Positions 5,053 through 22,768 of a DNA stretch of 64,000 nucleotides are shown piece by piece; position 1 is the first letter of the stretch, and each line of letters begins with the position of its first letter. The position numbers and the translations under genes were made by a program. The stretch covers positions 496,001 through 560,000 of the forward strand of contig NEEC01000015.1 in NCBI GenBank assembly GCA_002189035.1, written 5' to 3'. The notes below the pieces were generated by a model. The model searched no databases, had not been told where the DNA came from, and saw only the letters and a program-made list of their open reading frames with translations. The DNA comes from Utricularia gibba (Eukaryota > Plantae > Magnoliophyta).

Positions 5053-14455
<9,403 letters not shown>

Positions 14456-15235: not shown

Positions 15236-16756
15236 CTAGTTTCTCTTTGCAAAGCCTATCAGTGACAAAAACCCTTCAGAACTCACGATGATCATCATTA
15301 GGACCAGCAATAGCATGAGAATCATCTGCCAAGATTGGAAGTTTTTTCTGTCGAAGAGGTTCCTGAAGCTGCCCCTCTTCCTCCTGTTGTAATAGGCATT
15401 CACCTCTTGAATGACCGTGTCCAAGAAGCACAGTTTTGTCAGTTGGGTAAGCTTGTTCATGCCATTCCATAACTCAGCCGCTTCTTCATCACTTCTCAGA
15501 TGGTTCAGAAGGATCCCTTGTTCCCTCAGCGTCCTTGCATCCTCTGTGGTGTCGATTATTGCATTTATCAGTTCGACGTATCGAGTTAGAACCGGTGGTC
15601 CTGCTGCTATGCACGATTCATAGGCCACCAAGTTCCTGAGAACCACCTCGGAGTTGATGTCTACGCTGATGATGGGAAGGTGTAAAGTTGCTGTTTTTCC
15701 GTCAAATCTGATGCCGGCGATACCGGAATCCATGGCCGAAAAGTGCACCCCGACCCTCGATAGTTCAGTCACTGATGGAATGGTTGTTTCCTCCATCAAC
15801 GCAGGCTGGTTCCCCATGTCACAGTCTCTGTTTTCCGGATTCTCTTCATTGAAGAAAATGTATCCAACCTGTTTGATCAGAATCAGGCCTGGGAATCCGC
15901 AAATAAACTTCAGAAACAGTTTGCAGATGAACTTCACTGGCCTTGAAACCACTAGTTTCCTGATCAAACTAAGCGGGCTCGTCCATGGAATAGATTTTGG
16001 GTCATGTTGATCAGCAGCATCTTGTGATGGCTCTTCCAACTTGGGAACAGTCAGCTTGTACAAGAAATCCAGCAGATGGGCGGAATCCATGAGCTCTTGA
16101 ACATCGTCATCATCAAGCTTCTCTTTGACTCTTCTGAACGGTGAGATCTTCTCAAAAAACCCCATCAATTGTTTATAAAGAAACTCGTCTGATTCACATA
16201 CAGATTCCAACAGATGATGCCCTGTTTTCTTCAGCAGGAACAATGGTATCTGGTTCTCAAGCATGATGATATCTCTGATCACTGAATCATGGCTCCATCT
16301 TGATAACTGAAGTACCCCCTTTTGATCTGAGACATCAGCTAAAAATTGAAGAAGGAAACATGAGCTAACAGCCATCATCCAGGCGAGAGTTTCGCCGTCG
16401 AAACACAACACCTCATAGTAGCAATGCCGGATCATCAGCTCAAACTTGACCAAGTGATCAACAAGAGCCTGAAACTTGAACCCACGGTGCTCTCTTCTTG
16501 CTCTTCTTGCAGTAGCAATCTTAATAAACTCTGATCCTCGGAGCTCTCTTCGGAAATGGTGGTAAGGACTCAACCCCACCACCTGAGGAGTGTAGTGCTG
16601 TGGACTTGTGAGACTCATGGTTTTAGGGATGGTGAAGATGGAAACCTCGGCAACGGACTCCGATTCGTCGCTATCATCATCGACGTCGTCGAGCCATCTT
16701 CGAATGTCGATGATCCAACGTTGTTCGTCAAAATTCAGGTTAGATTTGGAGTTCAT
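15236..16756 (-). CDS. DUF247 / UPF0481 protein (At3g02645-like), intronless, 506 aa, C-terminal TM
   Basis: Motifs FDEQRWIIDI, SIFTIPK, YTPQVVGLSPYHH, DIIMLENQIPLFLL, IPSVTELSRVGVHF, LHLPII..DINSEVVLRNLVAYE and LTRYVELINAIIDT.EDA. Confidence 0.9.
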   Translation of the reverse strand: MNSKSNLNFDEQRWIIDIRRWLDDVDDDSDESESVAEVSIFTIPKTMSLTSPQHYTPQVVGLSPYHHFRRELRGSEFIKIATARRARREHRGFKFQALVDHLVKFELMIRHCYYEVLCFDGETLAWMMAVSSCFLLQFLADVSDQKGVLQLSRWSHDSVIRDIIMLENQIPLFLLKKTGHHLLESVCESDEFLYKQLMGFFEKISPFRRVKEKLDDDDVQELMDSAHLLDFLYKLTVPKLEEPSQDAADQHDPKSIPWTSPLSLIRKLVVSRPVKFICKLFLKFICGFPGLILIKQVGYIFFNEENPENRDCDMGNQPALMEETTIPSVTELSRVGVHFSAMDSGIAGIRFDGKTATLHLPIISVDINSEVVLRNLVAYESCIAAGPPVLTRYVELINAIIDTTEDARTLREQGILLNHLRSDEEAAELWNGMNKLTQLTKLCFLDTVIQEVNAYYNRRKRGSFRNLFDRKNFQSWQMILMLLLVLMMIIVSSEGFLSLIGFAKRN

Positions 16757-17065
16757 GGTGGCATTGTGTAGAGGAGAGGGATCCCCCTCTAGTCTTTATG
16801 TCGTTGAGAGACGCAGGTAACGGAGAGTGTAACTGTAAGAATTTGGTTTATGTTAAATGAGCCCTTAATTAAGAGATTGTTATTAATGTTGACTTAGTTC
16901 TTTATTAGGGAGACCGTGCATTAATTAATATTGTATAATAAAAAGATTTTTTTTTTAAATGGTGAAATTTTAATTATTTATCCCTTAAATTACGCGTGCT
17001 AAATAGATTTTTCGCTGTCACCCAAGTCGCTCACGACGCGCCGCCGCCGCTGCTGGCAACGAAGA

Positions 17066-18714
17066 ATGAGCTGTTCGATGTCTCTTGCGCTCAACATCTC
17101 ACCAACTCCGGGCACCCGCTGCGCGGTGGCGAAAGGTCCATTCAGTTGGGCCGTAGGACCTCGAGCATGCGTCGGCGAGGCGGTATCGGCACCAGGATCA
17201 AGCAGTGATATATCGGTTCATCAGACGAAAACCGCCAAAATCATGGCCGACGAGAAGAAATTCTTGGTGGGGACCTACGCGAGGTCGCCGGTTGTATTCG
17301 CTAGAGGTAAAGGGTGTAAATTGTATGATGTTGAGGGACGAGAGTATCTGGATCTGACTGCGGGCATTGCCGTGAATGCCCTTGGACATGGCGATCCTGA
17401 TTTTGTCGCTACCGTTAAGGATCAGGTGGAGCTGCTCACGCACGTAAGCAACGTCTTCTACACTGAACCACCGGTGAGTACATGCTATTCCTTTTCCCTC
17501 TTTGAAACGGGGCACCTTCTCCTTAGTCAATTCTGTATTTGATGTGTTCGTTTCTAAAAAAACGACGCGATTTGTGTTGTAGAGGCTGAGTCCCCTGAGA
17601 AATGCACTGTGGAGAATTTTTCTAGAGCTTGAACTCAAAAAGACTGAATCTTTTTGCAGGTGGTGCTTGCGAAACGCTTAGTATCCAGCTCATTTGCGGA
17701 TAGGGTGTTCTATTGCAACTCTGGGACTGAGGCTAATGAAGGTGCGATTAAGTTCTCAAGGAAATTCCAGAGAAAATCACATCCTGATGCAGAGGACCCG
17801 CCAGTGAATTTCATAGCATTTAGCAACTGCTTCCATGGTCGGACAATGGGCTCGGTTGCACTGACTAGCAAAGAGCACTACAGATTACCATTTGATCCTG
17901 TCATGCCTGGAGTCACTTTTTTGGAGTATGGTGATACTCAGGCTACAGTCGACTTGATTCAGACCAGAAAGTTTGCTGCAGTTTTCGTGGAACCAGTTCA
18001 AGGAGAAGGAGGTATACTTGGTGCAACAAAAGAATTCTTACAACAACTGCGTGCTGCCTGTGATGATGCCGGCTGTCTTCTCGTTTTCGACGAGGTATTG
18101 GTCATTGCGCCTCCTTCCCTGTTTTTATACCCTGGACTCTTTCTTTGATATGTGGCTTGCTTTGTGCCTGAAAGGTGCAATGCGGCCTCGGCCGAACCGG
18201 CCATCTCTGGGCACATGAAGCTTACGGTGTATACCCCGACATAATGACAGTCGCCAAGCCTCTCGCCGGAGGGCTTCCCATTGGTGCTATCCTAACAACT
18301 GAGCGCATCGCTGCTGCCATAGCTCCGGGAGACCATGGCAGCACATTTGCCGGCAATCCCTTAGTCTGCAGTGCTGCAATCACAGTGTTTGACAAAATAT
18401 CAGACCCAAGATTTCTTGCCAGTGTGTCCGAGAAGGGACAGTATTTCAAACAACTATTGGCACGAAAGCTTGGAGGCAATCCCCATGTCAAAGAAATACG
18501 AGGTTTCGGGCTCCTTATCGGCATAGAGCTAGATGTGGCAGCCTCCCCAGTAGTGGAAGCATGCCTACAGTCAGGTCTCCTGGTTTTAACCGCAGGAAAG
18601 GGAAATGTAATCAGAATCGTGCCTCCATTGATAATCTCAACGGAAGAACTGGAACAGGCAGCCAGTATCTTGGTTAGTTCACTTACTGCTCTTGATGCCC
18701 GGAGCAAGAGTTAA
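17066..18714 (+). CDS. WIN1: Acetylornithine aminotransferase, plastidial (class III PLP enzyme), 3 exons
   Basis: Exons 17066-17473, 17660-18094 and 18175-18714. Transit peptide, then [35 protein letters not shown] and the PLP motif [12 protein letters not shown]...[14 protein letters not shown]. Confidence 0.95.
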
Positions 18715-18968
18715 CTGTTTCACCCTGCGTGTGCCATGGTAAATGTGCCATATAACTATATATGAATCGCTGGATGCTGGTCTTTAAAGTTTATCTTTTC
18801 TTTTTCTTGTTCCCTTGAATTCTATGGCAACATGCATTCTCTTCATATGAATGTACTTTGAGGGGATTCATCCGATGCATTTAGTCCTCTATAAGAGCAT
18901 ATGTAACAGTTGCAGAAGTACTCAAAGTTTCAAAAACAATGGTAACTGCTCAAGAATCGAATTTGGCG

Positions 18969-19805
18969 CTATGGGAACTTTTGCAAGGTGTCATTTTGTC
19001 TATTCAGCTTGGTATCAATCAGATCTCCATCTTCCAGTTTCACCTGGGAATGCAATTCAAAGGAGAATGACACATTAGAAGCTGCGATTCTCCATTCATG
19101 CATGAAACAGGGGGAAGATAAAGAGACCTCATCTGGGGTGCTCTCCCCTCGGAGGCGATGACCACGGCACACGAAAACAAAGTGATCCCTCTCCACTTGT
19201 TGTTGGTAACAGTAAGCATTCATCAGTTTCCTCAGAGGGGTTGTTCTTTTCATCCTGAACAGCTTCACATCATCATCCTGCCCCTGTGGAAGCCATGGAA
19301 GGGGAGAACTCAACTCCTGCAGTGCCTTAGGAGACCTACCAGACAGACCTCTTTCTTGAGTTTGAGACAGATTTTGGTGGGCGGCTCATCTTCGTCCAGA
19401 TTTCGATGCAGAAACACATCAATCTCATCCCCATCTTCCAGTTTCATCTAAACAAGGGCATCATCAATGGCGTAACGTGAAAAATAGATAAGCCATCAGA
19501 CTACACAAGAAACAGAGTAGAAACCTGCCGTGGGGTGCTGTCGCCGAGGAGGGAACTGCCGCTGAACAAGAAATCAAAGGCATTCATCTCCGGACGTCGT
19601 CGGACACGAATACAATACGCATCCATCAGTTTCTGGAGCGGCGTTGTTGTTTTCATCCTGAAAATCCTTTCACTCCCACCCTGTGAATCGTCCGCAAAAC
19701 ATCATCTCACAGATGAAAGACAGAGGGAGGAGAGAGGGAGAAGAGTAAAACCCTTTTAACACGAAGGTTGATGCGTGCTGCCGCCGTCTCTTCTGCCGGC
19801 TCCAT
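18969..19805 (-). CDS. Di-SUMO-like protein (two tandem SUMO domains, no C-terminal GG), 5 exons, 179 aa
   Basis: Exons 19805-19752, 19680-19525, 19447-19349, 19283-19128 and 19043-18969, all phase 0 GT-AG with an open frame. Each unit has INL.VK / FRMK.TTPL.KLM.AYC / STP / KLEDGD.ID SUMO motifs. Confidence 0.82.
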
Positions 19806-19841
19806 TCTCCGACCCTCCCCACTGGTTGCAGTAGGCATCAC

Positions 19842-19849
19842 TATTTATA
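19842..19849 (-). promoter_or_regulatory. TATA box of the di-SUMO gene
   Basis: TATAAATA on the minus strand about 40 nt upstream of ATG 19805. Confidence 0.55.
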
Positions 19850-20096
19850 CAACAGTACCAATGGAACCAAACCAAAAACGCATGATTAAAAATCAAATAT
19901 TATATTTTTAAATGAATATATGAATTTACTTTTATCTCATTTAAACTATTAAAAAACTATAAAAAATAATTTATCTTTAACGCATGTGCTAAATGCCTCT
20001 CTTTAGAGGGCAACTCATGAAATCACAAGCAATTTTTCAACTGTTTATTCCAAAGCCAAGAGTTTCCAGCTCTGAGAGGCAGCCGCATGCGCATAT

Positions 20097-20566
20097 TCAG
20101 ATGAAGTGGATGCGAGCTCCGCCGCCATACTGATGGACGAAAGCATCGATCTCGTCCCCGTCCTTCAGCTTCATCTGAACCAGCGGTAAAAGAAGAGGTA
20201 CTGTTATTTGCTATCACAAAGCTTTCACCTTCGAAAGCGTGCGTGCGTTGGGTTTATATAAAGCCCATATCTTGCCTGGCATGGCGTGTTCTCCTCTTGG
20301 AGACGAAGGCCATCCATCATGAACACGTAGTGCCCGGGCTGGACGCCACGCTCGTAACAGTATGCATTCATAAGTTTCTTCAGGGGGGTCATTTTCTTGA
20401 TCCTGAAGAATGTTCTGTTATCGTCCTGCGAGATGGGAGCCATTGCATATCTAAGTAACAGAAGGACAGGGATTAAGAGAAGAAGGGATGCAAGAATGAA
20501 GCAAAGCCAGACGCTGTCTTTGACTGTGAGATTGATGTGCGTGGAGTCTTCTTTGCCTGTCTCCAT
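20097..20566 (-). CDS. SUMO: Divergent SUMO paralogue with di-glycine (QYGG) and a 7-aa C-terminal extension, 3 exons, 93-aa precursor
   Basis: Exons 20566-20513, 20425-20276 (canonical 150 nt) and 20174-20097. Protein: [41 protein letters not shown]...TPCQ-MKLKDGDEIDAFVHQYGGGARIHFI*. Intron 2 has a GC donor (CAG|GCAAG). TATAAAT at 20630-20636. Confidence 0.82.
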
Positions 20567-21013
20567 TCTATGGGGCTGCAACTGAACGATTCTCCCTTCT
20601 CCGTGCCTCAAATACAAGTGGGGGGTGGAATTTATATCGACACAGAAGGAAACGGATCGCTTGAACCTCAGAGACCGTACTGCTCCAAGGGGTGTTAATG
20701 CTGCTGTTCTTTCACCTTCCAGACAGGTTTCCTCATCAAGGGTGTGCCCATTTATGTAAATCTTAACGCTTGGTTGATAGCCTGGGGCCATCTTTTGAGT
20801 TGTGCAGTTTTGAGCAGGTCTTTTTTGGTGAAAATGGACTGCAGAGGCCATCAGATTTATTGGGGAAAAGGGTGAATAGAACTCCAAGAAAGGAGTTTGA
20901 TTTCATTTCACTTGAGTGCACAGTATAGAGAGTGTGGCGGCTCTTTGCACAACACACAACGCAGCACCAGCACCTATAAAGTACAATACACAGCAGGATG
21001 GCACAAGCATCCT

Positions 21014-21847
21014 TCAAACCTGGGAGACAGGAGCTTGCCCGTTTTCGACACCTAAACCATACAAAACACCAGAGTACTTCTCCATTGGGCCGCTGAAGAA
21101 GTTCTCCCGCAGCTTTCTGAAGGTGCAGGATGTGAGCAGACTGTCGGAGCCGGCTTGATGGCAAACCCCGACTCTCTCCACCTCCAGGAGCTCAGCCAGC
21201 TTGTTCAATCCGCCGTGCAGGCTATTCGAGAACTTCATCAGATGCTTGATATCGTAAATCACAGGGAAGAATATACCCATCAAGCTGAAAAAACCCCCTT
21301 GGGAATCGGGTAAGTTGTGGCAAGTAAGAAGCTTGAGGAGGTATCCGAAGTCATAACCACTGTGGAATGTCACCCAGAAGACCTTATCGTTCAGGACAAT
21401 GCCTGATGACATTAGAAGCTCAGCGAAACGTCTAGCGTCGACGCCCTTCTCATTATTCGCACCGAAATCAATGCCACTTTGGCTCAGGAGTTCGATTGAA
21501 TCATTCGCAAAAACATCCTCATTGGGGTTGAATTCACGGAAGTTGAATTGCCAAATGCACTGTTTATCAGTCCCACAAGTAGGCAAGTTCCCCAGTTCGT
21601 CAGAAAACGTGAGTCCCAACTGAATCAGCTTCAACAAGTCTACATTGTCTTTCAATGTCTGGTAATGATAATCACTCGAGTTCTTGAAGTTGCCCACCGG
21701 ACGAAGAACAACCCCAGGAAACTCAGTGTCCATCGCGACGTAAGGGTACTCATCAACAATTTCACGAATCAAATCAAACTCCTGTTCCAAATTATCAGCC
21801 CAAACCTCCCGGATCTGAATCGAATCGCTTTTAGGCAAGAGTGACAT
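21014..21847 (-). CDS. CAF1: CCR4-associated factor 1 (CAF1/POP2) deadenylase, DEDD family, intronless CDS
   Basis: [16 protein letters not shown]..., [21 protein letters not shown] and [11 protein letters not shown]. Confidence 0.96.
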
Positions 21848-22768
21848 TTCCAGCAATTTTCACAAGACGGGGTCTTGGTTCTTTACCATTCAACGATCGA
21901 AGATTTTCGAGAGCCCCACAAGCGGATCTATCGAGATTATCGCCAGCTAATATCTGCAGAAACGTCACCGAGGAATCGCAATCAGGCCCAGACCGGAATT
22001 AAATCAAAACAATCTTACTTAAATTTGAACACGGAGTACAATACAACAGATCTACCGTGGAGCCCAGCGTTTCTAAACGAGATCAGTCGGAAAAAGAAAA
22101 ACTCGAACAAGACCAGCACAACCCCAAAAAGGTAATCGGGTAAAACCTAAAGCAGATCTACTATTCGCTCACCGCTTCTTCGCTAGTAATTTCTCAGATC
22201 AATCATACCTCAAGAACCCATATCCCAAAACAACATATTTCAGGAAAGGACCTCACCTCGTCGCCATAAAAAAAAAGGATACGCATCCAAATAAACCAAG
22301 ATCTAGATCCCTTCTGTTCACAGGAGTGCTGGGATCCCTACTGGGCATGCATATGTGTGAGAAAAAAAAGGCACAGTTCAGACCTTGGACGAAAAACACA
22401 CGCTGAGAAAACGGGATTTTGAATGTCCAGACGATGTATTTAACTACAGAAAAGGAAGAAGCAGAAGTCCAAATAAATACCCACTACCTTTTTTCTTCTT
22501 GAATTCGCTGCCGAGGCTCTCCACTCTCTCCCTCCTCCGCCTCCCTTCTCGGATGCTTTTACATTTAAATATTTATTTATTCCGTGTTTCCTAAATATTT
22601 AAATATCATAAGGGGCATATATTGAATATACGCTAATTTCATTTACACATTTTGTTGAAATATTTGTTTACTTTTTGGATTGACTACGAAATTTTATCTG
22701 AAATTCGAATTTTTCTTTTAGACGAATGTCGAGTACTTGAAAAACGACAGCGTTTTGAAGAGGAGGCG

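Follow-up and report, generated by a model that had tools for sequence, protein, structure and literature searches.

The window, that is, the whole 64,000-nt stretch of Utricularia gibba DNA analyzed here, carries on its minus strand an intact gene in which two SUMO-like domains are fused head to tail and neither is followed by a di-glycine. We somewhat favor reading this gene as a lineage-specific di-SUMO-like concatemer which, if expressed, would act as a bivalent SIM-binding stand-in for a chain of two SUMOs. Fusion of SUMO-like units and loss of the di-glycine have already been described or annotated in eudicots, and the Utricularia gene is a further case of this known evolutionary pattern.

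Structure of the di-SUMO-like gene and loss of the di-glycines

The di-SUMO-like gene occupies positions 19805-18969 of the minus strand. Its five exons of 54, 156, 99, 156, and 75 nt (exons 1 to 5) join into a single 540-nt frame coding for 179 amino acids and a stop codon. The introns separating them (71, 77, 65, and 84 nt for introns 1 to 4) are all bordered by GT-AG and all inserted in phase 0; the donor of exon 1 reads AGG/GTTTTA. The features of the locus, in window coordinates, are as follows:

20097-20566, minus strand: single-unit SUMO-like gene for a 93-aa protein (exons 20566-20513, 20425-20276, and 20174-20097)
19842-19849, minus strand: putative TATAAATA box, 37 nt upstream of the ATG, read from the sequence
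19752-19805, minus strand: exon 1, which holds the ATG and codes for an N-terminal tail of 11 residues, none of them lysine, and for strand beta1 of unit 1 (INLRVKR)
19525-19680, minus strand: exon 2, the core of unit 1 (beta2, alpha1, beta3-4), matching Pfam Rad60-SLD
19349-19447, minus strand: exon 3, the fusion exon, in which the GG-less unit 1 end MKLEDGDEIDVFLHRNL is followed by an acidic linker and by strand beta1 of unit 2 (TKICLKLKKE)
19128-19283, minus strand: exon 4, the core of unit 2, matching Pfam Rad60-SLD
18969-19043, minus strand: exon 5, closing unit 2 (VKLEDGDLIDTKLNRQN..., GG absent) and carrying the stop codon

Exon 3 resembles exon 3 of the neighboring single-unit gene as well as its exon 1. 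It passes from MKLEDGDEIDVFLHRNL, the end of unit 1, into DEDEPPTKICLKLKKE, the beginning of unit 2, and is the composite of unit-1 exon 3 and unit-2 exon 1 that had been proposed in the preliminary description. The splice-site positions agree within one or two codons with those of the single-unit gene and of the di-SUMO-like gene of Rosa, as well as with the genomic ORF calls of archetype SUMO exon 2, in keeping with the earlier statement that both units retain the canonical SUMO intron positions.

Exon 2 contributes a two-residue basic insertion (RVRRRP) to unit 1. Several variants of the gene model can be drawn. In exon 4, an alternative in-frame acceptor 6 nt downstream (start 19277) would give a protein of 177 aa with a gapless match to the archetype, and an in-frame upstream ATG at 19837 would lengthen the protein by 11 aa. 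The anticipated TATA element was recovered as the putative TATAAATA box at 19849-19842, within a promoter space of approximately 290 nt. The A+T content of intron 3, a short intron (65 nt) whose splicing the fused frame requires, is 45%, below that of its flanking exons. Intron 4 (19044-19127, minus strand) contains no in-frame stop codon, and its retention would yield a 207-aa protein with a 28-residue insert ahead of the last strand of unit 2. The predicted 179-aa protein is basic (pI 8.3), whereas the archetype SUMO is acidic.

The joined 179-aa model was used locally, for the alignment, the profile, the tree, and tblastn against fetched loci, while database searches were run exon by exon or with a 114-aa open frame composed of exon 4, the open intron 4, and exon 5. 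Pfam Rad60-SLD (PF11976) matched exon 2 with 26.1 bits and exon 4 with 27.9 bits at a gathering cut-off of 23.8. A profile of archetype plant SUMOs delineated two full-length domains at residues 12-84 and 98-169 (profile positions 1-72 in unit 1 and 2-69 in unit 2), flanked by 11 residues before domain 1 and 10 residues after domain 2. The gene model, Pfam, and the SUMO profile therefore agree on two head-to-tail SUMO domains in one open frame of 179 aa, as initially described. The best match among single-domain solved structures was the plant SUMO 5jp1_B, with E values of 3.6e-7 for exon 2 and 1.1e-12 for exon 4, and the fused units are approximately 50-54% identical to the archetype SUMO. 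In the whole-library HMMER search, made on a collection without the species and its genus, no protein exceeded 59% identity. A homology search with the 114-aa open frame gave no match, and neither this frame nor the DUF247 frame of the window occurs as an exact entry among 15 billion proteins; with the species and its near relatives absent from that collection, these negative results carry no information on expression. The top matches of that search were proteins of approximately 500-2900 aa with 6-19 SUMO-like repeats.

The site of the archetype QTGG is taken by HRNL in unit 1 and by NRQN in unit 2, and direct reading of the 179-aa translation revealed no GG after either domain. Besides the di-glycine, the fused units lack two other marks of a conjugatable SUMO, the near-invariant archetype sequence and the N-terminal acceptor lysine motif. 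The archetype is nearly invariant in land plants, at 69 of 77 fold positions (Hammoudi et al. 2016, PMC6680281). Since both di-glycines are lost, processing by ULPs, activation by the E1, and attachment to substrates would all fail. Judged by the predicted ends of the domains, neither unit is maturable, activatable, or conjugatable by the canonical route, and the original claim that both are unconjugatable is upheld.

Locus context and origin of the fusion

Exactly three SUMO-like units were found by tblastn of the exons in the whole window. They form direct repeats with spacings of approximately 404 nt and 730-745 nt and together span less than 1.6 kb, one unit carrying GGG and two being devoid of a di-glycine. 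The single-unit gene lies 291 nt upstream of the di-SUMO-like gene on the same strand. It ends in QYGGG followed by a 6-residue tail, scores 39.8 bits with Pfam Rad60-SLD on its exon 2, and uses a GC donor in intron 2 (CAG/GCAAGA). Its 93-aa product may still be conjugatable, in the manner of SUMO5.

The cluster is flanked on one side by the 3' end of an acetylornithine-aminotransferase-type gene, convergent and with its stop codon at 18714, 254 nt away, and on the other by a single-exon CAF1 deadenylase gene (21017-21856); a DUF247 gene is situated on the far side of the aminotransferase gene. The CAF1 frame is 85-89% identical to proteins of Handroanthus, Salvia, Orobanche, Buddleja, and Sesamum. 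For the DUF247 frame, too, the best matches come from Lamiales, among them Erythranthe, Paulownia, Orobanche, Sesamum, and Salvia, with identities of no more than 45-49%. The host had been taken for a eudicot, which is correct, and it belongs to Lamiales. In Arabidopsis, CAF1 homologue 7 and SUMO5 presumably both lie in the At2g32 region.

In the five Lamiales families represented by Handroanthus, Salvia, Penstemon, Sesamum, and Buddleja, no SUMO-like sequence was detected within 10 kb of the CAF1 orthologue, and none was present in the 870 nt beyond the aminotransferase gene of Erythranthe. The gene order DUF247, BRAP2-type gene, aminotransferase is retained in Erythranthe and Paulownia; the BRAP2-type gene is missing at this place in the window, where DUF247, the aminotransferase, the SUMO-like cluster, and CAF1 are packed into 6.6 kb (15239-21856). 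In Penstemon, Catharanthus, and Cinchona, approximately 19-40 locus tags separate the orthologue of DUF247 from that of CAF1 on one chromosome. The closeness of DUF247 and CAF1 together with the absence of the BRAP2-type gene suggests gene loss or rearrangement in a compact genome. Elsewhere in the window, long open frames at 10087-13247 (minus strand) represent parts of the spliceosomal Prp8 protein (PRO8NT, PROCN, and RRM_4 domains).

The three units of the window are 43-46% identical to one another, and all of them, the single gene included, are approximately 50-54% identical to the archetype SUMO. They have in common three derived residues, namely P in place of Q in TPL and KL in place of EM ahead of DGD, seen in none of 160 related proteins. 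In the best tree, they formed one clade with support of 75/93.7, which is not strong and comes from 72 columns. A clade uniting all the first units of the plant di-SUMO-like proteins sampled was rejected with a p-AU of 0.03, the first-unit group having been chosen for this test after an initial view of the weak 72-column tree. The same tree, weak as it is, gave no support to an ancient origin in common with the di-SUMO-like genes of Rosa, Linum, and the Logan contigs. The proportion of silent differences (pS) equals 0.44 between the two fused units and 0.70-0.80 between either of them and the single gene. On the strength of the shared derived residues and the one weakly supported clade, we attribute the fusion to tandem duplication at the locus itself, and its origin was probably local and independent. 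No terminal inverted repeats were found around the SUMO-like cluster, and a transposon capture of the Pack-MULE type was therefore ruled out.

According to the proposed scenario, a diverged SUMO-like gene would have been duplicated locally in a small tandem cluster, bringing two units to lie head to tail. Unit 1 would then have lost its stop codon and 3' end and unit 2 its start, so that the last exon of the one and the first exon of the other became a single exon and the two units a read-through fusion. The preliminary description had put forward genomic tandem duplication with read-through fusion, and the presence of three homologous units at the spacings reported above bears this out.

Persistence of the frame, surfaces of the two units, and rival explanations

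The ratio omega between the two fused units was 0.71 (95% CI 0.39-1.25), a value that is compatible with neutral drift too. Against the single gene it remained below approximately 0.55, with silent sites saturated. The searches yielded no orthologue of the di-SUMO-like gene. In a neutral simulation in which only substitutions were allowed, the start codon, the frame, and the eight splice dinucleotides all survived in approximately 3% of trials at 0.1 substitutions per site and in a fraction below 0.001 at 0.2 substitutions per site. Given this outcome and the large silent divergence of the units (pS 0.44-0.80), the frame must have been guarded for much of its history.

The main residues lining the beta2/alpha1 groove (F, R/K, I/M, K, T, K, L, and Y; FRMK..TPL.KLM.AYC) are present in both units. 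The preliminary description had stressed that the SIM-binding beta2-alpha1 region is kept, and to the extent that FRMKTTTPLQKL and FRMKRTTPLRKL are present and the main groove residues preserved, this stands. The region is not singled out by its conservation, however, as the identity amounts to 12 and 14 of 22 positions in the groove stretch of the two units and to 19 and 20 of 38 in the remaining positions, i.e., the groove is kept only slightly better than the rest of the domain. A different picture emerges for the surface facing the E2. In SUMO-Ubc9 complexes, the acidic residue of FLFDG touches the back of the E2. This acid is replaced by Ser in unit 1 and by Arg in unit 2 and is retained in the single gene. 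As the key acid is changed in both units, backside binding of the E2 by the fused units appears less likely, and the suggested role as a modulator of SCE1/Ubc9 is weakened.

Without di-glycines, any function would be non-covalent, and the predicted protein, if expressed, would act through such contacts alone. Because the main hydrophobic and basic residues of the groove are kept in both units, the likeliest mode would be that of a protease-resistant mimic of a two-SUMO chain, a bivalent SIM binder. Its targets for binding or titration would be tandem-SIM proteins such as SUMO-targeted ubiquitin ligases, PIAL/SIZ ligases, and ULPs. The bolder proposal, that the gene is both expressed and selected as an independently evolved, uncleavable two-SUMO mimic and that together with the genes of Rosa, Linum, Medicago, and Ipomoea it makes up a recurrent class of non-covalent regulators, is one we regard as rather unlikely.

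It is possible, if doubtful, that tandem duplication in a fast-evolving SUMO-like cluster left the gene behind as a silent or trivially expressed by-product, drifting without function and still unbroken. Such drift would fit an omega whose confidence interval includes 1, the disappearance of both di-glycines and of the E2-contact acid, a GC-rich intron 3, and the small promoter space. It would also fit the lack of a SUMO-like gene up to 10 kb from the CAF1 orthologue in the five other Lamiales families and in the 870 nt of Erythranthe, and several GG-less SUMO paralogues of Arabidopsis and Brassica are rated as pseudogenes by Hammoudi et al. (2016, PMC6680281). What speaks against it is that neither the 540-nt frame nor the start codon nor any of the eight splice dinucleotides is broken despite an old divergence, a combination with a neutral expectation below 0.001 at 0.2 substitutions per site. 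The core fold and the groove residues are kept as well, and comparable fusions persist in three Rosa species.

Production of single-domain proteins with no fused protein at all seems improbable to us. Unit 1 could be made through retention of intron 3 (115 aa), or unit 2 alone (109 aa) from a transcript starting in intron 2 and using the ATG at the start of exon 3. Exon 3 indeed opens with ATG, a retained intron 3 leads to a stop after 12 codons, and the composition of this intron is the weakest of the four, but every splice site is canonical and every intron is in phase 0, neither a TATA-like element nor a long promoter space precedes exon 3, and the Rosa gene is annotated with the same fused five-exon layout. 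Still harder to credit is orthology with a known two-SLD family, be it grass DSUL/GSUL2 or RENi (Rad60/Esc2/NIP45), even though RENi and some grass concatemers share the head-to-tail SUMO-like domains without GG. Domain 1 is preceded by a mere 11 residues, while the SLDs of RENi end a longer protein; the closest sequences are archetype plant SUMOs and not RENi proteins; and the intron positions are those of the SUMO gene itself. Moreover, the units cluster with the neighboring single SUMO-like gene, and the DSUL locus is described as grass-specific, whereas the genome studied here is from Lamiales. The reading as a lineage-specific concatemer with a capacity for bivalent SIM binding is the one we retain.

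Relation to other SUMO concatemers

The RENi proteins (Rad60, Esc2, and NIP45) likewise possess two consecutive SUMO-like domains without a di-glycine, which act non-covalently. They are, however, long proteins with C-terminal SLDs, whereas the product of the window gene consists of two domains and nothing else. SLD2 of RENi binds Ubc9 and has an obscured SIM cleft; in the window units, the groove residues are kept and the Ubc9-contact acid is replaced. With 11 residues before domain 1 and 10 after domain 2, the architecture ruled out membership of RENi.

Grass DSUL/GSUL2 genes (maize DiSUMO-like; Srilunchang 2010) resemble the Utricularia gene in being head-to-tail SUMO-like fusions that arose at a tandemly duplicating locus. 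At the grass locus, such fusions occurred repeatedly and independently, and some of them have no internal or terminal di-glycines (Hammoudi et al. 2016, PMC6680281), so the absence of internal and/or C-terminal di-glycines is a likeness as well. Maize DSUL differs in that a C-terminal di-glycine is predicted for it, and it is regarded as a modifier that undergoes conjugation and has targets of its own. The grass genes belong to Poaceae and the present one to Lamiales, and the latter is probably of independent origin, its units grouping with their own neighbor. Membership of the grass DSUL orthogroup is very unlikely, given the Lamiales host and this grouping of the units.

Among eudicots, Hammoudi et al. 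(2016, PMC6680281) described the SUMO-like hotspot SUL-gammaC, the source of Arabidopsis SUMO5, with tandem duplicates and a variable di-glycine; some of the entries are flagged as gene fusion or misannotation, and a SUMO2::SUMO3 fusion was noted in Arabidopsis lyrata. By this description, the hotspot and the window cluster are alike in their diverged tandem SUMO-like genes, variable di-glycine, and occasional fusions; in the window, a GG-bearing single unit adjoins a GG-less fusion.

GG-less di-SUMO-like proteins of 182 aa are annotated in Rosa chinensis, R. rugosa, and R. sericea (XP_024198147.1, XP_062017898.1, and KAM5585473.1). The annotations of Linum tenue (164 aa), Medicago truncatula (319-366 aa, four to five units), Ipomoea nil (356 aa), Oxalis, and Artemisia likewise contain SUMO concatemers devoid of GG, as do two assembled contigs from plants. 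The Rosa gene shares the layout of the Utricularia gene: its five exons, the third of them fused, encode two SUMO domains, and neither domain carries GG. The annotated eudicot concatemers nevertheless differ from the Utricularia gene: the identity is approximately 35-40%, synteny is lacking, their units do not group with the window units, and the junction peptide is of another length and sequence. The preliminary description had envisaged an independent eudicot origin. The origin does appear to be local, the units grouping with their own neighbor, but the gene is not a eudicot first, because at least six other eudicot genera have annotated concatemers without GG.

Another di-SUMO-like gene of Lamiales was noted in Henckelia pumila (XP_073135604.1; fetched locus 10001-10450). 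It is intronless, has a truncated first unit, and ends in cysteine instead of GG; a further SUMO-like fragment lies 1.5 kb downstream (11952-12059). A Logan contig of SRR30806928 encodes a related protein of 193 aa with two units, and the Henckelia gene has the look of a distinct lineage, of retrogene type, among the GG-less di-SUMO-like genes in Lamiales.

Reviews still describe the di-SUMO-like protein as a grass speciality. The Utricularia gene and its annotated look-alikes in several eudicot genera indicate that GG-less SUMO-like fusions recur outside the grasses, and the eudicot concatemers have so far not been studied as a group. The interest of the gene would grow with a spliced transcript and purifying selection. 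If silent, it would exemplify the fast decay of duplicated SUMO genes, the archetype being dosage-sensitive. If expressed, such genes would provide natural uncleavable mimics of SUMO chains and a simple handle on how plants read poly-SUMO signals; were the mimic reading true, the Utricularia protein would bind SUMO-targeted ubiquitin ligases and tune poly-SUMO signaling.
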